Assembly (NCBI GenBank): GCA_047495785.1
Contig: JBLDXI010000025.1
Location: 1,116,001-1,180,000, forward strand
DNA: 64,000 bases
Origin: Lepidodermella squamata
Taxonomy: Eukaryota > Animalia > Gastrotricha
Direction of reading: 5' to 3'
In this document: positions 8,194 to 55,736 of the stretch, piece by piece
Layout: every line of letters begins with the position of its first letter
Position numbering within the stretch: the first letter of the stretch is position 1
The notes under the pieces: model-generated
Told to the model about the DNA's origin: nothing
The model's database searches: none
What the model saw: the letters and a program-made list of their open reading frames with translations, nothing else
Translations under genes and position numbers: made by a program

Positions 8194-10779
8194 TCACCAA
8201 ACGTCACAACGTTCGTGATAGCGAGGGTTCATCTTCGACCCGCTTGGGCATGAGAAAGCCTTTGCGAAAGGCGCAAAGTTTTTCAGGCCCTCGTTGATCC
8301 TAGAATAAAAATTGAGGCCGATTGATTAAAATACAAAGGACATTCGTCAAAAACCTTTCAGGAGGATAGGCATGTTCATCCTTCAGCATTGCTTCCTTTC
8401 CCTTAGGAGTTGCAGCCTGGCAAAGTGACTGAGCATAGCTGACAAAGAACAGCTGCTCGTTGTTCAGCGGAATAGCAGGAAGCTCAGTGTCTCTCAGCTT
8501 ATCCATGTATGCCTTAGTATAGGCCTGAATTGCATAAAATTCATGTACATGTTGTACTCTTGCGCTATATTCGACTAACCAAATGCGAGATCTTCATGCC
8601 AGCATTGTCGGCAATGTTCTCGCCTAAAACTGCCTCGCCGTAGCCGTCGAAATCAGGTCGCAAGTTTTGAAACTGGTCGAGCAAGCATTGAGTCCGTTTC
8701 TCGAACTTATCAGCCGCATCCTCGGTTAAAACTGGCTTGTACTCACCAACTGCGTTGAACTGAACTCCGTTATTGTCGAAGCCGTGAAACATTTCTACAA
8801 ACAACAATAATCCATGCTATTTGTGAAATATTGAAGCAATTACCATGTCCTATCGTTGTAGCGGCGAAACCCCAATTCCAAGCTGCAGGCATGTCCCATT
8901 TGAACGTTGGAGCGATGAAGTAACCAGCCAGCAATGCGAAAGCATTATCAGTTGATTTGTAATATGCGTTTTGATCCATAACCTTGGACGGCTCGCCATC
9001 ATCCCATCTGACATTAGAAAAGCATCAATCATCACTCAGTCAAAAAAGGTAGAAACTTGCAAGTTTTTAAGGCGGTCGACAGGTTTATCAAGGAGCTGAA
9101 ACCGGTTTCTAATGCGATAATCATTGAAAGCTTTGATGTTATGAAGATAGTCTGGGCCATTGATGTTGAGGTTTTTGAAACGCTCGTCATAGCCCTCATC
9201 CGACATTAAATCATTGGGATAGCCCATGGAAAACAGCATCTTATCGACTTTCACCTTGATTTCATCTCGCGATTTCTCATCCAGCCATTCGATTGATGGG
9301 AGGTATTCGAGGAATTCATTCATTACAGCCCGAGTCATGTCGTTGAGATACTTCACATTCGCATCAGGAAAGTAGCGCTTGACAAATCGTCTTGCAATCA
9401 GGTGATCTCCGAATCTGTTGGTCGTGGCCTCCTTGCATCCTTCCTGATTCTCCTTCACAGCGTAGCAAGCTTCATCGACGGGGGTAATTTCCTGCTGTTT
9501 GATAAGTTTCTTTAGGTTTTCGAATGGTAGACCTATTGAACAGGCAATTTCATTGAAGTAAGGCTCCAAAGTTACTAAGGTGATATAGTTCTGAAGAATT
9601 CGCTTTCCACGATCCTTTCTCGCCAAAGTTTCTTTAATCAAAGCTTCCAACCTCCTGAAATAGCTTTTGTGACGGATTGAGAGCCGCAAATTGATGATAT
9701 TCTTCTCGGCCAAAGTTTTTGTTCCGATTTTCTTGCCAAGATTAGTGAAAAATTCCTCCCAATCGAAATTCCACCCAATTTCATACTTTAGTTCGTAGGC
9801 AGGCATGTCAAATTGATTATCATAATCGGTAGCGTAGCTCTCATCATCATTATCGTCGTTATTCTCATCTTCATCTTCATCCATAACTGGGGTAATCTAA
9901 ATTTCATCGATTTTAGCGTCGGAGTCTGAGAAGAGAAGGTAAACTTACTTCTGCAAGCTTCTGTTCGAATTTGATCATATCAGCAATGTATTTATTGTTG
10001 AAGTATCGTTGCGGTCTTGTTGCTGTTTTTGTCGCCAGGTCTTTCACGAGATTCTCATAGGTTTCCTCGATCTCTTCTATCAAAAGCGAAGTAGTATTTT
10101 CGTCATCCTTTAATGCATTCATAGTGTCGTTGTTAGAGAAGAACGGCGTCATTACAGGTTTTAGCATGAGCTGATAGCGAGACGAATTGCGGGTATCGAC
10201 TTCGACTGAAACATCGAAAAACGGAAACCCATTAGAACTAATTGCATTAGCTAGGGCTTTCTCGAGACTCCAGATTTTAGGTATGTTCGTCTCAGCGAGA
10301 AAGAATCCTCCAGTTGAGGCAAGAGTAGATCTCAAAAATGAAATTGAGCTTGCTTCGTCGTCAAAACGCTCTTCCCCTTCCTCGCAGGACTAAAGCACAA
10401 AAATCAGTTTTGATGGAATAAATTGCTCTAAATTCACATTGTAAAATTCAAGTAGTTTCGATTCGCTCTCGGGATATTCCGTAGTGTTTCCCTCCAAGAA
10501 GTCCTGCCAAGATTTCGCAACCATGTCCCTGAAACTTGGCTCCATTGGGGTCTGAGTGTCTTCCTTTAAAAACACGTTTTTCTCGAAATTTCCGCAACTG
10601 AATTGATGAAAATCTTCGCATGGATCAGCATTTAAATCGAGATTGCTAAGGGCATAACTTGCTGCCTGGATACAGGACGCGGTCAAGCATGTCCCTCCTG
10701 GAGACGCCGATTCTATTGGGAGACCAGAGGTTACCATCAATACAGCCGCAAGTGCTGATAGAACTGTTAAAAGTGACAT
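8194..10779 (-). CDS. Secreted M13 (neprilysin/ECE-like) zinc metallopeptidase, multi-exon
   Basis: Signal peptide. CLTASCIQAA..NLDLNADPCEDFHQFSCG; QNAYY; GH|EMFHGFD (HExxH split by an intron); GENIAD; EQLFFVSYAQSLC; FSCPSGSKMNP..CDVW. Short GT-AG introns link the ORF-track fragments. Confidence 0.93.
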
Positions 10780-11330
10780 GACAATGAAAAATAATTTCTT
10801 GATATCCACTGTAGATAGCAAGATCAAGAATCGATCTGACTACAGCTTCGCGAGATCGAAATCAGTTCGATGAGTTCATCACAGCGAGAGTGATGATAAA
10901 TTGGCGCGCCGCGGCGATTGAGGGTATGGTACATCTTATTTCTGCTGTAACCCTGCGGGGTAAATATTTGTTTTTTTCTCCTCATTTTTTTCACCGAGAG
11001 CGAGAGTAATTCGCACGTTGAGTTATGCTTGATATACTTGCTTATAAACAGATTGATGAGTAACATGAATGCTCCTTCTCTTTTTTACGTATTCTATACC
11101 ATACCAGCCAGCGGGGTGTTAGCTTGATCCAAAGAGTTATAGCTCGTTCTGGTTGAGCTAGTCAAATTTATTATTGTTTTTGCTCTTGCATCAACACCAT
11201 TTAATCGTGTTCAACAAAACCAGAATAAATAATGTCAATTGAACCGGAGATTTCGAAGCAGCGGAGTCGACGTAGCCAACAATTTGGCTGTTAAATTAGT
11301 TGCATAAGATAGGAGGTTGAATAAGGTAGG

Positions 11331-13461: not shown

Positions 13462-16400
13462 ATGAATGAAAACGAAGTCGAGGCCGAATCACATGGCCGG
13501 GCTGTAAAAGCAAAGAAATCATCGATAAATCTCCGAGATTTTGGTCACCTCATATTATTTAGATTCGCAGATCGGAAGGATGTTTTGTTGATGATTTTTG
13601 GCTCTTTTCTTGCCCTTGCTCAAGGCGCAGGCGGCCCAGCGTCGACAAACATCTATAGATCAATCATCGATGGATTGATAACATTTAATCCATGTTGGGA
13701 CGAAGTGAGGCAGCAGCTTCAAAACTCATCCCTTGATAACACATCCTCCATCGATTTGGAGAAGGTTTCGAAGTATAGAAAGGAATTTCTTTACGCGAAG
13801 TCAGCCCTGGAGATGGTTGGGCCTTACTGTGGATATTGTGCGCTGACTGGAATTCTTTTGATGGTTACCGGGGTTTTAGGAGGACATCTTTGGAACCTAA
13901 CCACTCAGCGGCAGATTCTTGAATTAAGGACCAATTTATTCAAAGCTATCCTAAATAAGGACATATCGTGGTTCGACAGGCGACAAACTGGTAGTCTGAA
14001 TCACACTCTTTTCGAGTAAGTCTTATCCTATTCGCAGACTGAACTAATTTAAATTCACTTAAGGCAAGTTCGGAAGATCGAGCAAAGTTTGGGTATGAAC
14101 ATGCATCTAGCTCTTTTCTACATTGGAGGGGTATTCACCGGTTACATCAACGCTTTCATTGCGGACTGGAAAGTTGCTCTGGTCATGTTTGCTTTCAGTC
14201 CACCTCAACTCCTCGCATTCGCAGCTATGGTGAAATACACTAGGAAGTTCGCGACCAACCAGTCTAATTCTTACAAGGAAGCTGGAGCTATCTCGTACGA
14301 AGTCTTGGCTGGGTCTAGAACAGTTGCTGCATTCAACAGACAGGAATATGAAGTTGATAGGTACCGAAAAAGCCTGGCTGATACAGTTCACTGGGGTGTA
14401 AGAAAATGCATGGCTACTGGTATTGGTCAAGGGACTGTTCAAATGCTAACAGCTGCTTCAGTCGTTATCACATGGTGGTGGGGTAACAGGTACAGTTATA
14501 CATCTCAGTTATTCAAACGGTAATTGATCGATTTTCAGCATTTCTCAATCTGGAGGAACGGTTATTCAAATCATTATGTGTGTCAACATGGCGGCGATCT
14601 ACTTGACTAATCTCTCCCGGGTTTATGAACTGACAGCTGTGGGTCTCGTGGCTATGAAGGACGTGTTGTCTGTTATAGACGAACCCTCGAAAATCAACAA
14701 TTTTGATGATAGAGGTTTAAAGCCTACTAGCTTGAAAGGAAACATCGAATTCAAAAGCGTTGCATTCTCCTACCCATCTCGTCCTGGCAGTGCTATACTA
14801 AAGGATTTAAGCTTCAAGCTTGAAAGGGGTCAAACGATTGCCTTGGTCGGGCCGTCTGGAAGTGGAAAGTCGACGATACTGAACCTGCTTCTTCGGCTAT
14901 ACGAAGCTACGGGAGGCCAAATAATATTGGATGGTGTTGACATCAAAGATCTGAACATTCGTTGGCTCAGGCAGCAAATCGGAGTTGTTGGTCAGGAACC
15001 AGTACTTTTCGACCTCACCATATTGGAAAACATCAAATTGGGTGCGTTGGAACCGGAAAAAGTAACTGATCAGCAGGTCATTGAAGCCGCTAAACTCTCT
15101 CATGCTCATGACTTCATTTCGAAACTCCCAATGGGATATCAGACAAAGATCGGCGAGAGAGGTGCACAGTTATCTGGCGGTCAAAGGCAAAGAATCGCTA
15201 TAGCAAGGGCGTTGGTCTCAAATCCTAAAATCCTTATTCTCGACGAAGCAACGAGTGCGTTAGACTCGACAAGTGAAAAATTGGTTCAGGATGCGTTGGA
15301 TCAAGCTAGCGTTGGAAGGACTACTCTGATCATTGCCCATCGTTTATCAACCATCAGGAATGCCGATATTATTGCTGTGATAAACGAAGGTCGAGTCGAG
15401 GAGTTAGGAACTCACAATGGGTTACTGGGGAGAGATGGATTATACGCTAGACTGGTGAAGAATCAGCGGGAAGAACCATCTTCAATACTTGATGACACGC
15501 TTCACTATGTACCGAAAAGTGATATTTCAATTCACTTTGGCGATGATTCCAACCATGAGTCGTCTGATAAGTGGTCAAATAAGGATGAGGAATCGCAACA
15601 AGGCCCTGATGGCGCTGGCTTCTTAGGAATTATACCTTCAATAAAAAAAGTAGTCTTAGATTGGGGCAGACCGGAGATTGTTCATAGCGCTACCTGCATC
15701 GGTATCGCCGTGTTAGTCAGCATTCACCAACCTATCACCGCTTACATAGGAAGTGAATTCATCGGAACTTTTTGCCCTGGGGAGTCGGACAAACAGCGTT
15801 TATACACCCTGATGGCTATTCAGATTTCAACCGGAATATTCACAGCTTGCGTCATGACTATCGAATCGTGGCTCTACGGAGTTATCGCAGAGCGGCTAAC
15901 TGAAAGAGTAAGAGGTCGACTATTAGGAAAATTCCTTAGAATGGACGCAGCATGGCTGGATCAAACGAAAAATCAGCCTTCAGCTCTGAATTCTTCCTTG
16001 GACAGAGACACAGTTGATATCAGAGGGGTAACATTCATTATTACATTCGAGCCAATGTTCAAGTTTAATTCGATTTAGGCTAGTGGAATCTTTCTGAACA
16101 ATATCCTCGGATCCTTTTCATCACTTATGATAGCTGTCGTTTTCTCCGCTGTATTACAATGGGAAGTACTGCTAGCTGTTGTGATTATAGTACCACTCAT
16201 ATTCCTATCTACGGCTATCTCAAGTAGGAAGACTCTAATCGCTGGATCTGATCGTGAATTTAGAACCCTTGTCTCAAATGCTACCCAAGCTATGGCTAAC
16301 ATGAGGACAGTCATGTTTCTCAGGCTTGAGCCTTACTTCCTCAACCAATTTACACAACATTATTCATCTTTGGTTGGGGAGGCCGTCATGCAGGAACTGA

Positions 16401-17473
16401 AGATATCGCCGTTCCTTCAATTCAACCGTTGTGGCGCCATGCTAGCGGCCTCGATAATTTTCAGCCTCGGTGCGTACTTGATCGACCGTAAAGAGACTAA
16501 TATCGTCGATTTGGTCCGCATTTACACCCTCGTTGTCTTCTGCGCGACAGCTGCTGGTCGCAAAAATGATTCTATAGCAGATGCTGAAACAGCCAAAAAT
16601 GCTGTCAGAAAAATTTCTGAAACTCTCGCGTACGAAAACCAAATCGATAAGGAAGATCCGAAAACTGGCGAATCTATCGCATTCCAGAATTTCACCTGTT
16701 CAATTGCGAAAACTTCGAGTGAGATTGAGTTTAGAGAAGTTACTTTTGCCTACCCTAGTCGGCCTAAATCAAGAATTCTCAATGGACTCTCGTTCAAGAT
16801 AATAGCCGGGGAGAATGTGGCATTCTGCGGAACAAGTGGCTGCGGAAAATCCACAATATTGAACCTTCTTCAACGGAATTACGATCCAGATTCTGGAGCA
16901 ATATTCGTTGATGGGGGTGATATCAGGCTGGCAAATGTCAGAGACCTTCGTTCTAACATTAGTGTTGTATCTCAAGAGCCTACCCTTTTCGCAATAAGCG
17001 TTAGGGATAACATCGCCTATGGAACAAAGGATCACAGAATCAAGCCATCTGATGAAGTGATTGAAGATGCCTGTGAACGAGCAAATGTTACCAGTTTCGT
17101 CTCTAAGCTACAAAACGGCTTGGAAACTACTGTTGGAGAAAGAGGAGCTCAACTATCTGGCGGGCAAAAGCAGCGAGTTGCAATAGCTAGAGCCCTAGTG
17201 AGAAATCCTTCAATCATGCTACTCGATGAAGCAACGTCGGCTTTGGATACTGAAAGTGAACGGATTGTCCAAGATGCTCTGGACCAGGCATCAAGAGGAC
17301 GGACTAGTTTGACCATCGCTCATCGACTGTCGACCATTCAGCAGTGTGATAGGATCTTCGTCATGGATCAAGGAAAAATAGTGGAGCAAGGTAGTCATAA
17401 TGAATTGATGGCTGCAAGAGGAATCTATTATTCACTTCATCTGATCCAATTATCGAAAAACATAACAAACTGA
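13462..17473 (+). CDS. ABCB1: Full-length ABCB/P-glycoprotein-type transporter (TMD-NBD-TMD-NBD); exons 13462-14015, 14064-14489, 14539-16027, 16079-17473
   Basis: Two NBDs with Walker A (GPSGSGKST, GTSGCGKST), signature LSGGQ and Walker B ILDEATSALD/LLDEATSALD. FSYPSRP/FAYPSRP motifs and FRFADRKD at the N-terminus. Three ~50-nt introns keep the frame. The symbol indicates the family, not proven orthology. Confidence 0.93.
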
Positions 17474-31993: not shown

Positions 31994-33121
31994 TCAAGAA
32001 AAATCCAAGTAAGCTCTGTCATATAAACTATGTAAATGCGGCTTATCGTCTGGGTGAGTTCGCCATGAATAGTCGATCGTAGGATCCTGAGAGAGAAAAT
32101 TCATTTTAAGACTATCAATAATTCCATAACATACCGGCCAAGCTTCAATGTCCCACTTCGCAGCCAAAACGCTTAGAACACTCGAGCCATGACCTGATGT
32201 TATCGATTTGCTCTCAAATGACGACAACACACCAAGATTCATCGAAGCCTCCAGCCATTGAGTAACAAATTCAATCGAACGCGCTGTTTTTCTGAAGACT
32301 GCGACATATCCGGACACAAGTTTCCCGTTCAAGCAACGGCCTTCCGAGCAGTTCATTTTTTGAAAGATGCTGTTATGGGCATAGCTAGAGATGGGGTCAG
32401 GTGTCTCGAACAAAGCGATATCTCTCTCCAGTTTCCACAACAAGCAATTCGGGCCGTCGTCGAAATTCCCGATGAAGTATAGGCCAGGATCTGTGTACAC
32501 CAAAATATCGTTTTCATCAACAGCTTCCAGAGCTTTGAGGATAATGTACGGTTTCCACAGCCACAGGTTACCATCACTATTCTCCGCCTTCATGAGCTTC
32601 AAGAAATCTCTATCGAGAGATGAGCTGTTGAAGGAAATGCATAGGTCAAATCCGCCTATTCCGGTTCCAGTGTAGCAGTTGAAACGCTGAGGATTCGGGT
32701 AGCCTCTTTCTGCGTAGTTGACAAGAACCCGTTTGCTGTTCCAGAATTCACCGAGAGGCGAGTCGCACCTATCGCTTCTTGCCCATGAACCACCATGGAG
32801 CACGTTATTACGATAGAAGATGGTCGCATTGGGTAGCCGTTTTTCAAGATCTGTCTTAGTATGCTCTTCCTCTACTGTTGATAAGCTGAGGGCTGGATCT
32901 TGAGTTGAAATCGTGCTTGGCGGCGTAGATTCTGGTTGAGTCTGTGGTAAAGTTGCTGTAGACTCAATCGAATCGTCTTCCGTCGTAGTGGTCGGCTTTG
33001 TTGCACGAGTTACTGGAACGTCAAGCTCTTCCGAAGAAGTCGAAGTCAAGTTTCTATAGAAAAGATAGGCCCATGAAGCTATAAACACGTAGAAGAGCCG
33101 CCGTTTTCTCAGCATGGCCAT
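31994..33121 (-). CDS. Glycosyltransferase-like type II membrane protein, array copy 1 (divergent)
   Basis: N-terminal basic plus hydrophobic anchor, T/S/P stem, LWLWKPYIILKAL, ILVYTDPG and WP|DP intron. Lacks HRNDQS. Confidence 0.8.
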   Translation of the reverse strand: MAMLRKRRLFYVFIASWAYLFYRNLTSTSSEELDVPVTRATKPTTTTEDDSIESTATLPQTQPESTPPSTISTQDPALSLSTVEEEHTKTDLEKRLPNATIFYRNNVLHGGSWARSDRCDSPLGEFWNSKRVLVNYAERGYPNPQRFNCYTGTGIGGFDLCISFNSSSLDRDFLKLMKAENSDGNLWLWKPYIILKALEAVDENDILVYTDPGLYFIGNFDDGPNCLLWKLERDIALFETPDPISSYAHNSIFQKMNCSEGRCLNGKLVSGYVAVFRKTARSIEFVTQWLEASMNLGVLSSFESKSITSGHGSSVLSVLAAKWDIEAWPVCYGIIDSLKMNFLSQDPTIDYSWRTHPDDKPHLHSLYDRAYLDFS

Positions 33122-33401
33122 AGGATGTCGAAATTTTTCCTGTCAAAATTGATGGATAGTACTGCCTCAAAAAGTCCTTAATAAGGCGCTTTGAGGTATA
33201 TTTTCGAGAAAAATCTATCAATGAGAGCAGGTACAAACTCTTTCATAATCAACCACGCAAATTCGCCGTTTGAAAGAAATACACCCACGTCTGATCCGCG
33301 TGGGTGTATAGACTGTGAATGGGATGTTTTGAATAGTCAATTATTGTTTGCAAAAACTACATCTTTTTATTTCAAGGAAGCTGCACCTTATCGTGTGACA
33401 A

Positions 33402-34648
33402 TCACTTGGCGAAGTCTATGAAGATGTTCCCTAACAAGCTTCTGAGATGATGTTTCCCTTTAAAATCCTTCGTAGTCGAACGATGTGTGGACGGATCCTG
33501 TTAATCACAAGAAAATAATGAATCTGATAAAAAAAATAATAGAGTCAAGCTTTTACCGGCCAAGCCTCGATGTCCCACTTCTTAGCTAGAACACTCAAAA
33601 TGCTGGCATCAGGATTGGATCGCTCGAAAGTGTAGTACTGCCTTGGTTCAATCGCGGCCAGACCTAATTCTTCGGAGTAATCAAGCCATTCTTGAACAAA
33701 CTGAATGGCCCTCTTCGTTTTACGTAACAGAATGAATGCAGAAGTCACCATTGTTCCGTTTTTGCACGCATCATCTGTGCAGTTGAGAGCAGAGAAAACC
33801 TCAGGCTTTGCATAGACCTGCATTTTCCGAGATGTTGCGAAAAGAGCAATATCTTTCTGCAGCCTCCACATCAAACAATTCGGGCCATCGTCAAAGTTCT
33901 TCGAGAAAAAAGCGTCTGGGTCTGAATAGAGCAAGAAATCGTTGTCATTCATCGCGAGTAATGTCTGCAAGATGATATACGGCTTCCACTGCCAAAAGCC
34001 GCCCCATGTTCCGTTCACCATCAAAATCTTGTTCTTCTCGCGAAAATCATTGTCAAACGATGATAAATTGAAGGATATGCATAGATCGAAACCGCCTATT
34101 CCAGTGCCTGTGAAGCAGTTGAATCTCTGGGCCTTTGGATAGCCAGTGTCTACGTAATTTATGAGAAATCTTCGGCTTTTGGAGAAATCTCCCAGCGGAG
34201 AATCGCAGTAAATGGAGTTGCGTTTCCATGCCCCACCATGCGCAGCATCATCTCGGTAAAAGATTTTCGTTCCAGGCAATGACTCTTCCAGGCTTAATTT
34301 GGGTCTACCTCGACCTGTGGTGGCTTTCGAAGGCTGATCAGGTGCTCTGCCGAGCTTCAAATTACTTGATGGTATTGAGGATTCAGTTGTAATAGAAATA
34401 ATCGGTAGCTGTGCGATTTGGGTTGTTGTAGTCTTTATATCTCCTGTAACCAAGACGAACGATCGCAGGGAGGAGGACGAGACTCGATGCTGAGTGGAGT
34501 CTGCAATGCTTTCAACAACCTCTTCAGCTAAATTTGGATTTGGATTCCAGATGATGAAGTAAGCTAAACCGAAACATGCAGCTGACACTGAAATTAAGAT
34601 GTAAAATAAGAGCCGGTGTTTTGCCATTATGACATATTCACGCTTCAT
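33402..34648 (-). CDS. Glycosyltransferase-like type II membrane protein, array copy 2 (divergent; last exon possibly frameshifted)
   Basis: TM anchor, GGFWQWKPYIILQTL, FLLYSDPD and WP|DP intron. The last exon stops at 33431 in frame, while the shifted frame resembles the copy 1 C-terminus up to 33402. Confidence 0.78.
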
Positions 34649-34883
34649 TCTTTAGAAAGCGATTCAGAAACGTCTCCGCAAATTGAATGGACTCATGGAA
34701 ATATGTATTCAGCCATTCATTCAAATGAGTTTCTTTTCATCTCAGGGAGATCCACTTCTCGTTTGGGACCAATAAAAATATCGAACTGATTCTCTTAAGA
34801 TGGATCAGGCAATGAGTCGAGTGATTAAGCTCCTATTATTTTAATAGTTTTAGGCCAGTCAGATAGGATCAGCACCAGATTTT

Positions 34884-35973
34884 TCAAGATTTATCTTTCG
34901 TATGCCTTATAAACGTTTTATTGAGTAAAGCGCTGTATTGAGGCTGATTTCGTAACCAAAATCCATAACCACTCTCGCCCCAGTGACCAGGATCCTAAAT
35001 ATAGCGAAATTAATTTTTGAAACCAAACTTCAATATATCGCCTCACCGGCCAGTGCTCAATGCCCCATTTCTTCGCCAAAATGCTGAGAATACTTTGATC
35101 GTTACGATGAGCCACGAATTCCGGGTCCTCGTTTTGCACCAAAGTCGAAGGATCGTTCGCAATTAACCGGAAATCCTCAGCGTAACTCAACCATTGCGCG
35201 GCAAAATGCAGTGATCGCAATGTTTTTCGAAATACAACATAAGCCGCGTTAATTTGAAACCCGTCATAACAGCTTTTGTCTAGGCAATTCATGATCAGAA
35301 AAGTATCTCCTTTCGAGTACTTTCGCTCTTTGTGGTCAGTAGTAAAAACAGCAATGTCACCTCCATTCTTCGCAAGCTGGCAAATCGGTCCGGTGTTAAA
35401 ATCCGCTACAAATTGAGTCCCAGAATCGGCATAGATTAGGATATCATTTTCCTCCATTGTTAGCAGAGCCTTGAACACAATGTAAGGCTTCCATATCCAA
35501 TAACCACCGCCGTGAGAGTCCGAAAGGGCTAATTTGTTACGCATGATGAAATCGTCGTCCAAAATGTGCTTGTTAAACATCACGCAGGTGTCAAAATAGC
35601 TGGAATTCAATCCAGTAGCGCAATTCAGGGGTTGTGACTTCTTACAGCACCGGTTGCCGTAGTTGATTAGAATTCTGCGGCTTGATGTGAACCATTTCGC
35701 TGATCCACATTCAGGAGCTGCGTTTGGAGTGTAGGGTGTACCACGGTGCAAAAATTTAGCTCTTGGGAAGGCGGTTTCTAACCTGGCCCGATAGGATATG
35801 TCGTTCATTCTGGATAGGTTAGTCCTGAGTGAAGCCAATTGCAAATCTGATTCGAGAGCTCGTTGTGTGTGACGAATAATGTGGGTTTTGACACGACTCG
35901 TGATGATATCCAGAGAAAATATATAGGCAAACAACAATGCGATTACGCAACCAATTTTAAAGCTTGTATCCAT
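34884..35973 (-). CDS. Glycosyltransferase-like type II membrane protein, array copy 3
   Basis: TM anchor; GGGYWIWKPYIVFKAL, ILIYADSG, HRNDQSILSILAKKW; terminal exon DPGHWG...HTKDKS*. Confidence 0.85.
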
Positions 35974-36716
35974 GATTTCGCGCCCTGAACCAAAGAATGG
36001 AGACTGATTGCTGAATTTTCTTCTATTGCAAAACTCAAATCAATTTATATGAAATTTAGCAATTGGCATAAATAATAAATAACAGTTGCTGCGGTATAAT
36101 ATGGCTAATTTAACTGTAGGCCATTACCCACTCAGGAAGACATTATTTGTTAGTATAGATAATGATTTAGCATTTAGCTCAGGCCAAGAGAAGCTAATAA
36201 CAAGCCTCTTTTAGCCACTTTCGTGACGAAAAACCCGCACAGTGAGTTGCTGAAAGATAAATCTTGCCTGCATCTCTGACGAATAATCAGCAGGTATTAT
36301 GTATGCTGTTTACACTGATTATAATCTTCCGCGATCTAGACGATGTCCCAGTTCGTAAAATTCGACTAAAATTCCGAGAAGGGAATAGCAAATTCTTGGA
36401 ACATTTCCGGAGAAACTCAAGGAAACTAAAAGTTACAAAATTATGGTCAAAGGTCAGTTTGTCAGTTTAATTCATGGCCGAGAGGCGACAAGTGGACATA
36501 AAACGTAGCACGTAGCAAAAGTGAATGTTCTGTCAAATAAATTTCAAATGGACAGGAATTTCATCAAGATTCTAGCCATGCTGTTTATTGTCCTTTTTCT
36601 CTTTTCATTTTCCTAGCATCCTTACTATAGACTTTATCTTGCGAATTAAAATAAAAATAAGATGTAAAGCCCTCGTGTATAGCATCATTAATGATGGAAA
36701 GTGTTACAGCATGGTA

Positions 36717-37880
36717 TCAAGATTTGTCTCTTGTGTGCTCCATAAAAGTTCTGTTGAGGTATTCGCTGAATTGAGGCTGATTGCGTAACCACTGGCCATA
36801 ATCCGTTATTTGGCCCCACTGTGAAGGATCCTGGAAAATAGAAACTATATCAACAAAAAGACGTGAGCAATTCAGAATTAGTCTAACAGGCCAATGTTCG
36901 ATGTTCCATTTCTTCGCTAAAATGCTAATAATGCTTTGATCGTTGCGATGGTCGACAAAATCCGGCGCTTCACTGGGTTGAATCGTCGAATCATCATTGC
37001 TGATCAAACGATAGTCCTGCGCATAAGTTAACCATTGAGATACAAACTGGATAGTGCGAAACGTCTTCCGGAAAACTAGAAAAGCCGCTGTGAGTTGCGT
37101 ACCGTTGTAGCACTTTTCCTCCATGCAATTCATGACCAGAAAGGTATCAGCTTTTGAGTAATAATGCTCTTTGTGTTCGGTGGTAAACACGGCAATATCG
37201 CCGTCGTTTTTCGCTAGTAAACAAATCGGTCCAGAATTGAAGTCCTCTTTAAAATAAGACCCAGAATCAGCGTAGACAAGAATATCGTCGTCATCCATAG
37301 CTAGAAGAGTCTTGAACACAATGTAAGGCTTCCAGAGCCAAAAACCACCGCCAGTCGATTCTGGGGTGAAGATTTGTCGATTGCGAGATCTAAACTCTTC
37401 GTCCAGAGACGTTTCGTTGAACATAATGCAGGTGTCAAAGCCGCCTTTCACGAGGCCTGTATCACAGTTGAGCGGTTGAGATTTTTGACAGCAACGGGAT
37501 GCGTAATTGACCAAAATTCTTCTGCTGCTATGAAACCATTTTGATTGGCCGCAGTTTGAGCCATTTTTCTCGTGAGGTCCAATTCGATGGCTGATTTTAG
37601 CCCGAGGAAGAGCAGCTGCCAGCTTAGCCCGGTATTCAAGCTCTAGTGGGCTGAAGACGTGGCTTCTATGTGATAACATGCGTTTCTCCAGCTCGGTAAG
37701 ATTCATCCAATTTAGAGTTGAGCAAAGATTCTGAAGGCTGAGCGAGCTGGTCACTTGATTTGCGATGTCAAGGCAAACGATGTAGACGATGAGTACAATG
37801 GCCAGAGCTGCGAAGAGGTGGTAAGCCCTCTGTTGGCGCTGGTTGAGCTGGCACGATTGATAGGCCATTCTCCCCATCAC
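36717..37880 (-). CDS. Glycosyltransferase-like type II membrane protein, array copy 4
   Basis: TM anchor; GGGFWLWKPYIV, ILVYADSG, HRNDQS; in-frame intron at WP|DP; terminal exon DPSQWG...HTRDKS*. The exact start codon is uncertain. Confidence 0.85.
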   Translation of the reverse strand: MMGRMAYQSCQLNQRQQRAYHLFAALAIVLIVYIVCLDIANQVTSSLSLQNLCSTLNWMNLTELEKRMLSHRSHVFSPLELEYRAKLAAALPRAKISHRIGPHEKNGSNCGQSKWFHSSRRILVNYASRCCQKSQPLNCDTGLVKGGFDTCIMFNETSLDEEFRSRNRQIFTPESTGGGFWLWKPYIVFKTLLAMDDDDILVYADSGSYFKEDFNSGPICLLAKNDGDIAVFTTEHKEHYYSKADTFLVMNCMEEKCYNGTQLTAAFLVFRKTFRTIQFVSQWLTYAQDYRLISNDDSTIQPSEAPDFVDHRNDQSIISILAKKWNIEHWPVRLILNCSRLFVDIVSIFQDPSQWGQITDYGQWLRNQPQFSEYLNRTFMEHTRDKS

Positions 37881-37969
37881 AAATGTCGTTAATTCATCTA
37901 CATAAGTACACTCACGATGGCTATCTATGGTCTGTGTTGAGCTTTACAAAAGAAGCATAGTGATAAACA

Positions 37970-39246
37970 TCACACTTTAATGCGAGTCGAGTTAATGTAT
38001 GTCTTTGCGATGGTGGAGAAGATGGCTGAAGTACGCAGCTTTACACCAAACTCATTCTCGCCATTTTGCGACGGATCCTGTAAAACAAATGAATAGCTAA
38101 GATACTCGGCATAACAGACATAATGGATACTAGCCATGAACAGGGTTAAGTTTGAAGCTGGCAAAGTTCTTACGAACAAAGATATGGTCAAGTTAAGGAT
38201 TAGGGTTGGGGTTGTTGTTAGGGTTAAGTCTACGATTAAAGCTTAACTTAAGATACTGACGGGCTTGAGGTGTTGGGGTTAGGGATAGGGTTAGGTTTTA
38301 GGTTTGGAAAAAAGAATGGGACTAAAGATTCTTAGCAATAACTTACTGGCCAAGGATTGATCTTCCATTTCTTTGCAAGGATACTCAAAACAGTCTGATC
38401 ATTCCTATTTGCTTGAAACTCAGCATCATCTTGTCCCAACTCACTCGCATCGTTACCAACAATCCGATAGTCGCTGACATAAGTCAACCATTGACTTACA
38501 AACTCAATCGATCTTAAGGATTTTCTCAGTAAAACGAAAGTTGCTATGAACTGGTTCGTTTCCGTGCAAGATGAGTCAGAAATGTTGCAGTTAATTAAAA
38601 GAAAGGCATCCCCTTTCGAAAAACGCTTCTCCTTCGCCTCATAAGCGAAAAGGACTATGTCTTGTTTTAGCACAGCTTGCAGACAGAAGTGGCCCAGATC
38701 CATGTTATCAATGAACTCACTCCCCGAGTCACTGTACAGCAAAACATCATCGTCCCGCATCGCAAGGAGTGTCTTGAGGATGATGTAAGGCTTCCAGACC
38801 CAAAATGCAGCCTGACCGCCGTAGTCAAACATCTTCTTATGCCGGTTTTTGAAGTCTTGGTCTAGCGAATCTGGAGTGAAGGAGATGCATAAGTCAAAAC
38901 CGCCTAACTGAAGGCCAGTTTCACAATTTCGAGGCTGGGAATTCCAACAACATCCCGCAGCGTAGTTAATCAATATCCGACGACCTTTAACTCGGGCGCA
39001 TCTCGTTTTAGCTGGGGTTTTACGATATCGAATGGTTACATTGTTAAGTTTATCGAGCTTAGAAGGTCCTTCTTCTACCAAATCCTTCTTTGGTATAACA
39101 GATGGAGTGTTAAATGAGGATGCATCAGGTGATTCACAGATACTTGGCACTGATAAGGGGCCCTTGATGAAAATTATTGCTATTCCCAAGACCATAACAA
39201 TAACAGTAAGAATTAAGCCAAGTTTTAGCACCAATGAGGTCTTCAT
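37970..39246 (-). CDS. Glycosyltransferase-like type II membrane protein, array copy 5
   Basis: MKTSLVLKLGLILTVIVMVLGIAIIFI anchor; AAFWVWKPYII, VLLYSDSG, NRNDQT; terminal exon DPSQNG...TRIKV* after a ~270-nt intron. Confidence 0.85.
38190..38307 (+). repeat. Degenerate TTAGGG/TTGGGG telomere-like tract inside the copy 5 intron
   Basis: ATTAGGGTTGGGGTTGTTGTTAGGGTTAAG ... GTTGGGGTTAGGGATAGGGTTAGGTTTTAGGTTTGG. Confidence 0.55.
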
Positions 39247-39457
39247 CTCTTCTTTCCATGAGAGGATGGATGGCAAACTCTAAAATAACTCATGAATGAG
39301 ACACCCAGCGCGTGAATGGACTCATTTTTATTGCTATCCTGTGTATAAAATTTGAGTAAACAAGATGTTTGTTTGCGAATCCATTCACAAAATACAGGTG
39401 TTTATTTTAATGAAAAAGAATTGCACTCTCGCAGGTATTCAGAATTGACATGGCCTT

Positions 39458-40912
39458 TCATTCCTTATTTCGAGTATGATGGATGAAAGTTTTGTTGAGT
39501 CGATTTTTGAAGCGAGGCTCCACGCGTTGATTTTTACCATAGCTGTTCAGAGAACTCCATTGCGAAGGATCCTGAAAAAATTGTGGAATCATAGAAAATT
39601 TGGAAATTAATTGAAATTTACAAACTCGAATTCGGATTTTCAGATTTTTTTCTTTCAAGTGCGCGGATAATAAAATTTAAGATTAAATTGTTGAAATGTT
39701 GAAAAATTCTGAAAACTTTTGAATAAAATTTCTAAAACGTTTACAAAAATTTCGAAAAATTAAGAATAACTGAAATTTTCAAAACTTATTAAATTTAAAT
39801 TTCAAAATCAGTTTCATTTTCACTAGGCGTGGAAGGAGCTTACCGGCCAGTGATCGATGTTCCTGAAAAATAGTTAAATTTTCTTAATGATTATTCGAAT
39901 GATTCATATACCATTTTTTAGCTAATATACTGACAATAGTTTGATCATTCCTATGTCCTTTGAAATCGTCCTTTTCCTTGTCAACAAACTGACTGACGCC
40001 ATTGGCGAGAATCCTATAATCCTGAGCATACGCCAGCCATTGAGTAACAAACTCAATCGACCGCATGGTCTTCCTGAACAGCAGAAACGAACTCGTCAGC
40101 TGCATTTCATCGTAGCACTTCGGCTCGAGGCAATTCATTAGGACAAACGCGTCTCCTTTTGAATACTGCCGCTCGGGACATTCGTAAGAAAACACGGCAA
40201 TGTCCTGCTTCAACTCGGCGAGTAAACAATTCGGCCCGAGGTCGAAATTTTCGACAAAAACCGACCCAGAATCGGCGTAGAGTAGCACGTCATCGTCACG
40301 CATGGCTAGCAACGCCTTAAGAATGATGTAGGGTTTCCACAGCCAGTACCTTGAAGGCGGGGAAGTGGGAGAAGCGAAAATCTCCGAATTTCTAGTTAAG
40401 AAATCTTTGTCCAGAGAAGATTGACTGAAAGACACACATAGGTCAAAACCACCAACCGTGACGCCGGTTTCACAGTTGAGTGGCTGCGAGATTTTACAGC
40501 AATTTTCGGCGTAATTAATCAAAATTCGACGGCCGGTTATCAACGGACATCTCTCCGATTGTTTTTTCTTCGAATATCGAATTTCGACGTTGGGCAATCG
40601 ATCGATTTCTGATATCACTATGTTGTTGTTAGGGTTAGGCTTGGCCTGAGGTTTCGCCTCAGCAGGGTGGCCTAAATAATCTGTGCACAAACACTGAGCT
40701 TGGCCTGCCATCATTTCCAACTTGAATTGCTCAGAACATCCAGCTTCAGCCATCATTTTGAGCCGTTCTGCTTTAAAGTCGCGATTTTTTGCGAACAGCA
40801 GAGGTCCGAGTAATAGATAGGTGATTAACAGGGTGACTGAAATCGATATAGCACAGCAGCACGTGAAATTTGATTTCAACGAAATCGCGAGTAAAATCGC
40901 TCGAAAATTCAT
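39458..40912 (-). CDS. Glycosyltransferase-like type II membrane protein, array copy 6; exons 40912-39912, 39862-39844, 39571-39458
   Basis: TM anchor; RYWLWKPYII, VLLYADSG, HRNDQT; a 19-nt mini-exon encodes (W)NIDHWP. Confidence 0.85.
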
Positions 40913-41909
40913 AATTCATCAATCAGCTTTTCGCTTGGTCATAACTATATAAAATGAGTGGAATTTCTATATAGGATAAATGTATGGAGTGGTGGTAGTA
41001 ATATTTTTCGTCTACTTAAACATAGGAAGTATACTCATACGAATGCTAGCATAGCTATTATTATTACTACCTGTTACAAAATTTGAGCGCAAATAACAAT
41101 GCCGGTTTCAGTAATATTTCACCAAAATAATAACAAGTACATTGTTCAATAAATTTAAATGATATATACATCAGAGTTTTTGTTATTTGCCATGTACGCA
41201 TCTCTTGGCACGCGGCTCGGAATTAGGTATTTACAAAGAACTTTCATAAGCAGCGTGTCCCATAATTAAAGCAAGGTAATGTAAATACACGGCAAAGGGT
41301 CCAGAAACTCTAAAATGAGAGCCGAAGTCACATCTGAAGGCCAGAAATTTGTTAGAAAAATTCAAAATATCACGAAAATAGTAATAAAGTATTGTCGCTT
41401 GTCGATGGGATTCAGTAAATCCGGAAATATTTGACTCAACCGGGTAAAATTCCGATAATTACTGAACCAGTTACCATCGGGGTTTTCCGGGTTTTCTCCG
41501 GTAAAGATGGAAAGTTTAATTTAAAAATTAACTAGATTAATTAATTGCCAAATTAAATAAATAGTTGCGCAACTTCTGGTACACGCTGTTATTATAACCA
41601 CGAAAACATTTACGAGCACCTGAAGATGGCGGCATTTGTGCTATTGTTTACCTTTCCGCAATTCGCTGCTTTTGACGGTTCACAAGACAGAATCTCCTCG
41701 CAACTTTTCCTAAGTGATTACAAAGTCGAACATCTGTTTTTTTATACTACTTTTAGCATGTTTTTTCTCATAAGGCGCAATATTTCCAGGTTTTTTCCCC
41801 AAATTCTAGAACCAATCCTGCACCAGAAAAAAATCGACCTCATTCATCTATCAACTATTTGTCTCATAAATCAGCCACAACTGTTTGTTTTCAAATGTCA
41901 AATTTTATT

Positions 41910-44000
41910 TCAATATTTTTGCCTCGTGTGATTGATAAAATTGCGGTTTAAAAGCTTTGAAAACAACGGCTGGCTTCGCATATCACGGCCGAACTTGCTC
42001 GCTTCGCCCCATTGAGACGGATCCTAAAATAAATTTTAAATACATTTCAGTTTGAGAAAAACATCAAAAAGATTAGGGAAATGAAAGTCCCCAATTTGGA
42101 TAGCCCGGAAAATTCTCAAACTAATTAGATTTTATTGTTTACCTCAAAAGGTATCGGACAAATTTTGAAAAATTTCACGAGATTTAATTAAAGAAATTAG
42201 CTTAAATTCAATTTTAAAAGCTGTCGAAAAAACTCACCGGCCAAAATTGAATTTTCCATTTTTTCGCCAACAAGCTCAAAATGCTTTGATCGTTGCGATG
42301 CTGCCGGAAATCGGGATAATTAGGCCGTAAAAAGCTCAGGTCATTGCTAACAGCTCGATAGTCCTGAACATAGGTCATCCATTCTGAAATGAACTGCATC
42401 GACCTAAGCGATTTTCTAAGCAGTAAAAACGCAGCGTTAGCCTGCGTTGAATTCGAGCATTCAACCTCATCGAGGCAGTTCAGCAGAACAAAAGTATCCG
42501 CCTTTGTGTACAACCGATCGGGTGATTCATTGGAAAATACGACAATGTCCGAATCTAGGTCAGCCATCAATTTGATCGGCCCCTGTTCGATGTTGGCAAT
42601 GAAATGCGACCCAGAATCGGCGTAGAATAGCACGTCATCGTCGCGCATTGTCAGCAGGGTTCGCCATATAATGTAGGGTTTCCACATCCAGTAGCGATGG
42701 ACTAGCAGAGGGTGGCTGAAAATTTTCGAATTCCTGCGTTTAAACTCGACGTCGAGCGACCATTCGTTAAAGGAGATGCAGACGTCGAATCCGCCGGTGT
42801 TTAGGCCCGAATCGCAGTTGAGTTGCTGCGCGTAATAGCAACACCCAGCGGCGTAGTTGATTAAAATTCGCCGGCCGGTAATTTTCGATGATCGCTCGTT
42901 CGAATTGGTTGAAATGTTATTGAGCGCGGCCCATCGCACGACGACGTTTGGAACTTCGGTGAAATCTCCGGTGGATTTTGGCCTCGATTCAACAGAGCTG
43001 GATTCCACTCCTACAATTACATAATTATATTTCATGTCAAGGTTGAAGAGCGATTTTTTTTATTTTCCATTTATTTAATTTCAATTATATTTTAATTTAA
43101 TTTTGGTTGAGAAATTTAAAAAATTCTAATTTTTAAAATGCAAAAAATTTCGAATCTTGCAAAATTTAAAAGCTTGTAAAAATAAAATGTGGCTTCATAA
43201 AATATTGGGGTGTCATTTACGCAAACGGCATTTGCGCTATTTGAGAAAAGTTGCCAAAATGTCGTGCTTAATTGTCGCTTAAAAGTTTGCCTCAGGTCGG
43301 CAACCAATTTTCACATTTTTTAATTTAAAATTACGAAAAGCGCAGGGCATAGATCTCAGAATAAATATAGGCTTGATTATCCTAGGTATTATGGTCCAAA
43401 AATTGAAAAATTGAGCTTAACTTTTGTTGAAATCCCAAAAATAATGTCATCAAAAAATTGTAGAGATTGTTATTAAACAGTTTGGCACGCGCTAAAACAG
43501 CAAAAGCGACAAAATAGCATTTTTGCTATTTATCTAGGTATTCTGCAGTTTTGTCGCGAAATGATTGATCCGCTGCTGTGTCGGGTTTGCTGTTATGGCT
43601 GTCTGCCAAAATTGTCATGCCTCGCTTTCAATGAATTAAATTTAAATGTAGGTATAGTGAATAATCAGGTAAAATTACCTGTATTTGATTTTGGCCTCGT
43701 TTTGGACAAATCGTCGCCTTTCTCATCCGTGCAATAACACCTGGCCTTGATCGCCAATTTCTGCCACTCAACATCTGGACAGTCGAGCAAATCTCTATCG
43801 CGCTGAGCCAGAGCAAGCGCAGTTAGTTTATCGTGAAAAATTCTTCTCTCAGCTTTCAGCTGGAGCTGGCTATCAAAGTAAAAATAGGCAAAACTGGCGA
43901 GTAGCGTTACAAGCGATGACAGAAAACACGCTGTAGCTTTTGATTTGTACAACTGCTGAAACGACTTTGAAGCGGTGAAAGAGTGGTATTTTATCACCAT
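41910..44000 (-). CDS. Glycosyltransferase-like type II membrane protein, array copy 7; exons 44000-43679, 43010-42238, ~42023-41910
   Basis: The TM exon (CFLSSLVTLLASFAYFYF) splices in phase 1 to a catalytic exon with RYWMWKPYII, VLFYADSG and HRNDQS; terminal exon DPSQWG...HTRQKY*. Confidence 0.85.
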
Positions 44001-53243: not shown

Positions 53244-55736
53244 ATGATTTTCTCAACTTTAGCAGTTGCTGCTCTGCTGAACTATGTATCAGCGAAGCCG
53301 ATCGATCCGTCAGTTGGCGTTGGCTCTTGCACAACTCCTGGTTGCGTCAAGGCAGCTGAGTTCATACTGAGCAATCTGGACCTGACTGTCGACCCATGTG
53401 AAGACTTCTACCAATTCGCCTGTGGTGGATATGCTGCTAATGCGATCATTAAAAACCAAAAAACCAAAAAACCGGGATTGGCAGAATGCGATGGCCGATA
53501 CTTTGGGAGATATGACTCAGAGGGCTTTGCTGGACTTCAACAGCGCAAATGTATCTAGCTTATCCCCCGCTGAGAAGAAGTTCAAGGAGTTCATGCAGTC
53601 TTGCGAGTCTGGTTCGGATCGCTATGATGATGTCGAATCTTCTGTCGCGTTTCTTCGCAATCTTGCTCGAGATGTTAGCGGACTGTTCATCAGCGATGAA
53701 GAGGTCAAAACGCGGTTTTGGAGCAGGTCCTCCCAACTACGTTGTTCGGTGGAACAACTGCTTTCTTCTCGGTTGACATCGATGTAAATCCTTCGAATGC
53801 TTCCGAGTTTCAGCTGTTCCTCGGCCCGAGAACTACGTATGTTTTCGGAGATCATGCCACGGTTCAACGTTTGATTGATAGCGACGAAGATAACGAAACC
53901 CTGAGTGATGCCAAAGAAATGTACGTCACCGAGATTACCAAGCTGTTCAAATGATCATACCCAGAAAGGACCGTTACACAGTTTCTGACACCTACATCAA
54001 GGATTTAGTGGAGTTTGAGGTCGAGTTGGCCTTGGTGAGTCAAACTAACGAAAACTGAACGCTTCCTAAGAATTAATTTTGCAGATTTCACCAAATATGG
54101 CAGAATTAGGCGATAAGCGCAATAATGACGTGGAGGATGCCAACTTTGTCGAAAATAAGGAAGACAGATTTGATGAGCGCTTGGAAGAACTTCAGAAAGT
54201 TAGCCCAAACATCGAATGGAAAGAATTTTTCCGTGTGTTGGGAGGCATAGCGGACGTTCCGTCACTCGGCTCAAAGGATCTACGAATTTCGTTCCGCAGC
54301 AAGACCTACTTCGAGAAGCTATCTCTGCTCATCGCCCAAACGAAGACTAAACTCGGCGCTGACCGAAGCAGACGCGTATTCCAGAATTACGCGGTTCTCA
54401 CAGCGATCGGCGCATTTCTCGATCAAATTGCCTGCGACATAACTCAACCACTGTACCAGCTTCAGGTCATCGCGCAGTCCACAGATGAGTCTGAACGTAT
54501 GTATTGCTGATGAAGCGTTTTGCGGGAAAGTCAAAGAATCTCAGCCATCGTGCGATGCCTTGATCCAGCAACAATTCGGCGATCACTTTATCGCCCGCCG
54601 CTTCTTAAAGCGATTCTTCTCCCAGGAAAACGTCGACTACCTATCAAACATGACAAGTCTAGTTTTGGCCGAAATTCGCAACGCTTTTGACAAGGTGACG
54701 TGGTTAGACGCTAAGGCGAAGGCTGCCGTCAAGCTCAAGGTCGAAAAGATTAAATTTTCAATGGGCTTCCCGCCAGATCTGATGAGCGAAGCTTACGATA
54801 TGAAGTACGATGCTCTGACAATCCCGGGACCAGATTTTGTGCACAATAAGAAAGCTCTTGGTGAATTCAACAATGTTCGCCTTTTGAGATTTCTTAATGG
54901 CCCCGTTGATCAACTCGAGCACTTGTAAGTGTTTTAATATGTAAAAACCTTAGAAGAAAATATATTTTTCTTCCAGCTGGCATGGCACTAAGGTTATGCA
55001 GCAAAATGCGTTCTACAGGCCGACCCTCAATACTTTCAGCTTGATCGCTGGTTACTTCGTTGCTCCTTCTTTCTGCTTCGACCTTCCTAGCGCTTGGAAT
55101 TGGGGATTCCCCAGCCAAACAATTGGACATGGTTCGATTCATTATTTCAAATACTCAGTGACTTGTTTATTTTTGAACAGAAATCATTCATGGCTTTGAC
55201 AGCAAAGGAATCAAATTCAATGCCTACGGTGAGTCGAAGTCAATTTTGTAAGGGGCGACGCTTGATAAGTTCAAGGAACAGCTGAAGTGTATCATTGATC
55301 AGTTCCAAGCATTGCGTCCGGACTCATTGAATTACGGAGAAGCCACATTGGCTGAAAATGCTGCTGACAACGCGGGCCTCAAGTTCGCCTATGCAGCCTT
55401 CAAGAAGGCTTTTGGCGACGATGGCCTCAAGAAGTTCGAGGTTCCAGGTGTTCCACTGAACAACGACCAGATATATTTCGTCAGCAATGCACAATCTTTC
55501 TGTCAAGCAGCTACACCGTTGGGGGAGATTATATTGCTTCAGGATGAGCATGCCTACGCTCCATGGCGGTGAGTTGTCTCAACCAAGACATCTAATCTAC
55601 TCATAATCTTCTGATTTACAGAGTTAACGAAGGTATGAAGAATTTCGAGCCATTCGCTACGGCGTTTAGCTGTCCAGTTGCATCAAAGATGAACCCAGAA
55701 GGATGGAAACGCTGCGATCTCTGGGCTCCCCAGTAA
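53244..55736 (+). pseudogene. Second secreted M13 peptidase, with about four frameshifts (pseudogene or assembly indels)
   Basis: Signal peptide, CTTPGCVKAA..VDPCEDFYQFACGG, QNAFY, GH|EIIHGFD, AENAAD and FSCPVASKMNP are all present. The frame shifts near 53455, 53715, 53950 and 54500 without evident splice sites. Confidence 0.75.

Follow-up and report, generated by a model that had tools for sequence, protein, structure and literature searches.

What kind of protein is encoded by seven similar, unannotated genes that lie side by side in the genome of the gastrotrich Lepidodermella squamata? The genes are found in a 64,000-nucleotide stretch of contig JBLDXI010000025.1 (positions 1,116,001 to 1,180,000 of the forward strand; assembly GCA_047495785.1), which we call the window and whose numbering is used for them throughout; they are numbered 1 to 7 in the order of their positions. 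We propose, with a probability of about 0.65, that all seven encode single-pass type II proteins of the secretory pathway, most likely of the Golgi, with a luminal GT-A glycosyltransferase domain of the family of A111/114R domain 1 (A111/114R-D1) of chlorovirus PBCV-1, and that genes 3-7 are active while genes 1 and 2 are inactive or re-purposed. The array is a real, unannotated glycosyltransferase set of ordinary format; of the large family of viral and bacterial proteins to which it belongs, a single member has been studied.

The array and its conserved domain

The seven paralogues are co-oriented on the minus strand between positions 31994 and 44000. A search with a profile of the seven copies found exactly seven in the array part of their contig (C25), each at 1e-119 to 3e-148, and their alignment contains 45 invariant columns. 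In each protein a short, mostly basic tail leads into a single hydrophobic anchor near the N terminus; a variable stem and a conserved domain of ~250 amino acids follow. The stems are unrelated between copies and are rich in Ser, Thr and Pro in genes 1 and 2. As read from the translations, the short cytosolic tail, the single N-terminal signal-anchor, the stem and the predicted luminal catalytic domain are those of the Golgi type II topology class. All seven genes share a phase-0 GT..AG intron placed after Trp-Pro codons near the end of the domain, with the next exon starting Asp-Pro (WP/DP, the slash marking the intron); its length is 48, 59, 52, 57, 269, 272 and 214 nucleotides in genes 1 to 7, respectively.

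A preliminary description of this stretch had anticipated much of this. Its seven co-oriented paralogues agree with the list of open reading frames (ORFs), the alignment and the profile search. Its order of tail, one transmembrane helix, unrelated stem and conserved domain is recovered from the translations and the alignment, its Golgi glycosyltransferase topology is matched by the N-terminal signal-anchor, and its WP/DP intron has GT..AG borders in 7/7 genes and is confirmed by complementary DNA (cDNA) in genes 1 and 2. The motifs that it quoted are present in the array (RxLINY, FDxC, WxWKPYI, YxDSG, RKTxRSxxF and HRNDQSxxSxLAKKW), but genes 1 and 2 depart from the set, with DPG or DPD in place of DSG and GHGSS or NPDAS in place of R-N-D-Q-S.

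To what fold does the conserved domain belong? Residues 100-387 of gene 4 were folded by AlphaFold as an in-frame read-through, together with 106 relatives. The model has a predicted local distance difference test score (pLDDT) of 90.1 and a predicted template modelling score of 0.89, and its only weak stretch is the 19 residues encoded by the intron. The top 50 matches among solved structures are all GT-A nucleotide-sugar enzymes, with Z scores of 13.3 for BoGT6a and GTB, 11.9 for glycogenin, 11.5 for LgtC, 11.3 for WbbM, 10.8 for GlyE and 10.3 for XXT1. Foldseek was in agreement (E of 1e-5 to GT6/GT8). As the preliminary description had supposed, the conserved domain is thus modelled as a GT-A fold, made of a single Rossmann-like alpha/beta/alpha domain. 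The DXD metal-binding motif is absent; the family reads D-S-G with the first Asp alone conserved, and the same is true of A111/114R-D1. Sequence searches of Pfam, NCBIfam and PDB returned nothing usable for the domain, and no Pfam model, GT8 (PF01501) and GT6 included, matched the seven proteins at E<=1, barring a sub-threshold match of gene 7 to PF03407. The family is, as had been stated, not a canonical animal glycosyltransferase family.

The shape neighbours of the domain in the ESM-Atlas include giant-virus proteins that pair it with GT2 and GT10 domains or with a methyltransferase. The GT2 and GT10 architecture of these relatives is that of PBCV-1 A111/114R, and the family was compared with this protein (860 residues, printed in the supplement of PMC7826918), whose locus was located by a 27-base degenerate pattern in a 330,611-bp contig. 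When a 107-sequence profile was aligned by hhalign with residues 1-260 of A111/114R (L215:591-1370), the probability was 99.95% and the E value 1.1e-37 over 209 columns. This alignment equates YADSG with YCDS, which contains Asp-85, and HRNDQS with RHDQS, which contains Asp-193 and Gln-194. With gene 4 alone, BLASTP gave an E value of 1e-16 to A111/114R-D1. By sequence comparison, these results place the array domain in the family of A111/114R domain 1. A111/114R-D1 has been modelled on LgtC and proposed to be an LgtC-like retaining alpha-galactosyltransferase of the capsid N-glycan core; it keeps the first Asp alone of DXD, and its Asp-193/Gln-194 have been equated with the D/EQD motif of GT8 (PMC7826918). 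A double mutant with Ala at Asp-85 and Gln-194 showed lower hydrolysis of UDP-sugars (PMC7826918). The array enzymes had been described as uncharacterised; no Pfam or NCBIfam model covers them, but the family is not wholly uncharacterised, since enzymatic activity and mutants of its member A111/114R-D1 have been published (PMC7826918). GT114 (A075L), which was also considered, is not relevant, since it is a separate family with a GT-B fold.

With representatives counted at 50% identity, an exhaustive HMMER search returned 5,695 family members at E<=1e-3, of which 566 reached E<=1e-30. Most members are stand-alone proteins of 230-290 amino acids, and the named ones belong to a wide range of bacterial phyla and to some archaea. 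Their distribution is patchy, with a member in 16/401 Pirellulales genomes. More than 485 members lie on viral contigs, including metagenome-assembled genomes (MAGs) of giant viruses, and the best structural matches in BFVD (E of 1e-17) are phage proteins, a Hyperionvirus protein and an 845-residue protein. The occurrence of the motif set in bacteria and giant viruses, which the preliminary description had stated, is therefore confirmed by the HMMER search, the viral contigs and BFVD, and it extends to phages. Among 122 ORFs flanking 62 prokaryotic members there are 14 GT2, 10 GT10, 8 GT4 and 4 GT11 transferases, together with 4 Wzx-type flippase domains, 3 GDP-mannose dehydratases and 2 Wzy proteins; the domain is fused to GT10, GT4, Wzy_C, DUF1919 or methyltransferases in other members. 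Genomic context and fusions are consistent with an enzyme of glycan synthesis that often acts together with fucosyltransferases.

Catalytic residues and likely activity

Which of the seven copies have kept the residues of an active enzyme? Conservation was computed over 208 family sequences and is given in profile numbering. Y99, D101 and D209 are conserved in 100% of them and Q210 and R207 in 97%. Y99 and D101, the equivalents of Tyr-83 and Asp-85 of A111/114R-D1, are found in all seven genes. The Arg-x-Asp-Gln motif, equivalent to Arg-191, Asp-193 and Gln-194, is kept in genes 3-7 and is replaced by G-H-G-S in gene 1 and by N-P-D-A in gene 2. Gene 1 has lost Lys138, Asp140, Gln157, Arg207, Asp209 and Gln210 in all; gene 2 has lost Arg207 and Gln210 (Gln to Ala) and has kept the Asp. 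Every residue that is conserved in at least 85% of the 208 members, including those mutated in A111/114R-D1, is retained by genes 3-7, and the motif set of gene 4 is complete with Y203, D205, R312, D314 and Q315. The loop preceding WxWKPY, which is GGG in most family members, varies among genes 5-7; since genes 3-7 differ in this loop, they perhaps differ in substrate.

By homology with A111/114R-D1 and the GT8 enzyme LgtC, roles can be suggested for these residues. The Tyr-x-Asp after the fourth strand (Y203 and D205 in gene 4) would hold the diphosphate of the nucleotide sugar, probably through one metal ion. The Arg-x-Asp-Gln (R312, D314 and Q315) would serve both in donor-sugar binding and in catalysis, which would most likely be retaining and produce an alpha linkage. 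Because the sequence similarity to GT8 is not significant, the retaining mechanism is proposed from fold similarity and motif analogy. Genes 3-7, in which all of these residues are kept, are predicted to be active transferases. Since Arg, Asp and Gln are lost in gene 1 and Arg and Gln in gene 2, the products of these two genes appear to be inactive or re-purposed, though they are transcribed and spliced, and we regard them as probable pseudo-enzymes.

The state of genes 1 and 2 raises the possibility that the whole array is non-catalytic and encodes carbohydrate-binding, chaperone-like or regulatory partners of other transferases. Residues with 97-100% conservation in the family are missing from both genes, which are nevertheless intact, spliced and present in cDNA, and the full DXD motif is absent from the family. 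It is difficult to reconcile this explanation with the retention in genes 3-7 of all residues above the 85% level, those mutated in the viral relative among them, or with the location of bacterial members in glycan-synthesis clusters, where enzymes would be expected; we consider it improbable. Alternatively, the proteins may be active but inverting and metal-independent transferases with a deoxyhexose donor, as is the alpha-L-rhamnosyltransferase domain 2 of PBCV-1 A064R. That domain belongs to an unclassified family with many bacterial homologues, has a Pithovirus homologue fused to GT10, is followed by a methyltransferase domain and needs an extra C-terminal stretch (PMC9614988). Similar fusions are seen in the array family, which also has a C-terminal segment that looks essential, and its single Asp would fit metal independence. 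A word search with P0031, a fused member of the array family, found no chlorovirus protein. The homologue that could be demonstrated, however, is A111/114R-D1, with the GT8-like Asp-Gln signature of retaining enzymes, and the genome yielded no RmlC-type epimerase; the RmlD-like match found in the same search of the rhamnose pathway is uninformative. We consider this reading very unlikely.

Several observations nevertheless weigh against our proposal that the array encodes Golgi transferases, most of them active and retaining. We infer the enzymatic activity of the seven proteins from their relatives, and their Golgi localisation is suggested by topology alone. Evidence from RNA is confined to genes 1, 2 and 4 of the seven; no cover of gene 3 was seen in the cDNA run described below. 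The second Asp of the usual DXD is absent family-wide (DSG), and the use of a metal is thus uncertain. When compared by hhalign with a glycogenin-like (GT8) protein encoded in this genome, the family gave an insignificant probability of 0.16%. Finally, the published evidence for A111/114R-D1 is of donor hydrolysis and not of a defined transfer product (PMC7826918).

Gene structures, transcripts and origin

All seven gene models lie on the minus strand. Gene 1 (31994-33121) and gene 2 (33402-34648) were built from their ORFs and splice sites. Gene 1 consists of exon 1 (32135-33121), the WP/DP intron (32087-32134) and exon 2 (31994-32086), and encodes a type II anchor and stem ahead of the degenerate domain; gene 2 has the corresponding parts at 33557-34648, 33498-33556 and 33402-33497. 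Gene 3 (34884-35973), with exon 1 at 35047-35973, the intron at 34995-35046 and exon 2 at 34884-34994, carries the complete motif set. The ORF of gene 4 (36717-37880) has its ATG at 37877, so that exon 1 is 36888-37877; its intron (36831-36887) is in frame, and exon 2 is 36717-36830. Gene 5 (37970-39276) has its first ATG at 39246; its exon 1 extends to 38347, its intron occupies 38078-38346 and its exon 2 lies at 37970-38077, and its motif set is also complete. Gene 6 (39458-40912) is read as exon 1 (39912-40912), a candidate 49-nucleotide GT..AG intron (39863-39911), a 19-nucleotide exon (39844-39862), the WP/DP intron (39572-39843) and a last exon (39458-39571). The spliced reading is AKKW/NIDHWP/DPSQW, which matches the paralogues; without the 49-nucleotide intron and the 19-nucleotide exon, the protein stops early after KKWYMNHSNNH. 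The alternative to this candidate micro-exon is a 49-nucleotide insertion that truncates the gene. Gene 7 (41910-44000) has its tail, anchor and stem on an exon of their own (43679-44000), which is separated by a 668-nucleotide phase-1 intron within the stem (43011-43678) from exon 2 (42238-43010); the WP/DP intron (42024-42237) and exon 3 (41910-42023) follow. The stem in exon 1 of gene 7 is similar to that of gene 6. The underlying minus-strand ORFs are 31994-33121, 33545-34648, 34918-35973, 36717-37880, 38332-39276, 39884-40912 and 42214-43035, with an ORF of 111 codons (43665-44000) that holds the N-terminal exon of gene 7.

Transcripts were examined in one public run, X1, over genes 1-4. 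The run behaves as cDNA, as it covers genes 1, 2 and 4 and neither gene 3 nor the spacers, and one contig end carries a sequence that we take to be a SMART cDNA-amplification primer. The X1 contigs omit precisely positions 32087-32134 in gene 1 and 33498-33556 in gene 2, that is, the predicted introns; in gene 1, a contig of 1,103 nucleotides spans 32134-33156 with the intron skipped. Genes 1 and 2 are thus the two copies with proven spliced transcripts. The cover of gene 4 consists of short contigs, some of them only ~92% alike, and is weaker evidence. Over the same gene (36620-37819), many joints between opposite strands occur in short X1 contigs of low depth; they resemble artefacts that arise when short cDNA unitigs are assembled.

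Elsewhere in the window, a GH9 cellulase ORF (654-2967) is preceded by three fungal-type, CBM1-like Cys-rich modules and has paralogues of 48-63% identity on contigs C9 and C19. A full-length ABCB (P-glycoprotein-type) transporter is encoded at 13462-17473 as four long ORFs with very short introns, and the genome contains more than 40 matches to the ABCB family. In the distant flanks, at 9036-10827 on the minus and 54079-54928 on the plus strand, lie genes that we take, by eye from their translations, to be of the M13 (neprilysin-like) peptidase type.

How did the array arise? About 48 loci in the genome, of which two or more are broken, contain the C-terminal half of the domain. At other family loci an intron is placed around profile position 117-131, or the entire domain is free of introns (L168 and L169); the WP/DP intron thus marks the array. 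In IQ-TREE trees, genes 1 and 2 form a pair (support of 100/99), as do genes 3 and 4 (100/89), and genes 1-4 group together (99/95). The seven copies group with three metagenomic sequences (99/94), and a wider group adds three further loci of the genome and two more metagenomic sequences (100/98). Two of these metagenomic sequences fall within the array clade. On the animal-type contigs that carry them, which belong to another organism, they are found alone or in a pair; this indicates that part of the duplication is old and that the tandem layout is not shared. Given the ~48 loci and their differing intron positions, the array is one old branch rather than a fresh import. Several pairs of near-identical family loci occur on different contigs (C21:2347041-2352747 and C25:2448315-2454025; C36 and C42; C28 and C34), L168 and L169 differing by ~0.04 changes per site. 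Such pairs reflect either recent segmental duplication or haplotypes that the assembly left uncollapsed. The array itself is without such a twin, as the ABC-transporter and GH9 genes that flank it have no near-identical duplicates in the genome.

The preliminary description had proposed an almost intronless catalytic exon, possibly acquired by horizontal transfer. An old horizontal origin of the family in the host lineage is plausible, but a recent import is contradicted by the ~48 loci with other intron positions or none and by the sequences of another organism within the clade. Some of these observations would also be explained if the family were an old eukaryotic one, passed on by vertical descent and lost from most animals. 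The N-terminally anchored, Cys-rich sequences, 31 rows from several eukaryotic contigs and Adineta, form a set without any prokaryotic sequence, the loci of the genome are many and diverse in intron position, and one protein of the family is labelled as coral. Against such descent, the named eukaryotic members are, that protein aside, the bdelloid rotifers Adineta vaga and A. ricciae, compared with thousands of prokaryotic and viral representatives; the anchored set lies with a giant-virus-MAG clade on one side of a weakly supported branch (FastTree 88; IQ-TREE 37/94); and no Pfam-level animal family covers the domain. We regard vertical inheritance as rather unlikely. PBCV-1 D1 itself forms a long and poorly placed branch in the tree of the family. 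The coral-labelled protein (P0291, 407 amino acids, Paramuricea clavata, an octocoral) represents either a second animal lineage or assembly contamination. Six cysteine columns are occupied in 70-80% of eukaryote-type sequences versus 0-6% of prokaryotic and viral ones, save one column at 22% in viral sequences. These cysteines are of a luminal type and, with the N-terminal anchors, suggest adaptation to the secretory pathway.

Fucosyltransferase genes of family GT10 (PF00852) are also greatly expanded in the genome, with 89 exon matches at about 70 loci (on C1, C2, C9, C19, C24, C45 and others), many in tandem clusters such as C19:2107632-2176798. Nowhere in the genome does a locus of the array family adjoin a GT10 gene. 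One could imagine that the host lineage took up an A111/114R-D1-type transferase from a giant virus or bacterium, added a Golgi anchor and disulfides, expanded it to ~48 genes and, with the equally expanded GT10 set, now builds fucose-centred, highly branched glycans of a kind so far known only from chlorovirus capsids, with the motif-dead genes 1 and 2 as non-catalytic partners. We attach little credence to this scenario as a whole.

The array involves no new kind of mechanism, being of GT-A sugar transferases in the usual Golgi format. It ties an unnamed and very large family, without a Pfam or NCBIfam model, to one studied viral enzyme. For glycobiologists, an animal genome with dozens of membrane-anchored copies offers defined candidate enzymes and two natural motif-dead controls, and work on gene transfer gains a family whose nearest non-eukaryotic relatives may sit on giant-virus DNA.

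Comparison with known glycosyltransferases

How do the array proteins compare with transferases already known? DUF1647 (PF07801), GT34 (PF05637) and Nucleotid_trans (PF03407) are neighbours by language-model features and predicted shape, but no family member reaches the thresholds of those models. Gene 7 has a single match to PF03407, below threshold at an E value of 0.043. PF05637 has no match anywhere in the genome. For PF07801, there was none in the seven proteins, in 60 relatives or in the whole genome, and control genomes also gave none; the likeness to DUF1647 that the preliminary description had noted does not amount to membership and is a distant resemblance of shape alone (TM-score of 0.69).

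With GT8 (LgtC, glycogenin, GlyE and the C-domain of WbbM) and GT6 (ABO and BoGT6a), the array domain shares the GT-A fold at Z scores of 10.8-13.3. As in GT8, an Asp occupies the first DXD position, and Asp-Gln stands where GT8 has D/EQD in the published alignment of D1 with LgtC. The array family differs from GT8 and GT6 in having no match to their Pfam models, in lacking the second Asp of DXD and in lacking the HxxGxxKPW end motif of GT8.

The resemblance to A111/114R-D1 extends to the order of the motifs. The viral domain, which is soluble and has none of the extra cysteines, heads a fusion of three transferase domains, the others being GT2-like and GT10-like. Each array protein, by contrast, has one domain, a membrane anchor and a gene with introns, and shares only about 26-28% identity with the viral domain. 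The two nevertheless share the signature motifs GxGFWxWKPF, YxDS, WTK, QxxAxF, RHDQSILS and SQWG in the same order, the first Asp only of DXD, and an identical spacing of 108 residues from this Asp to the Asp-Gln.

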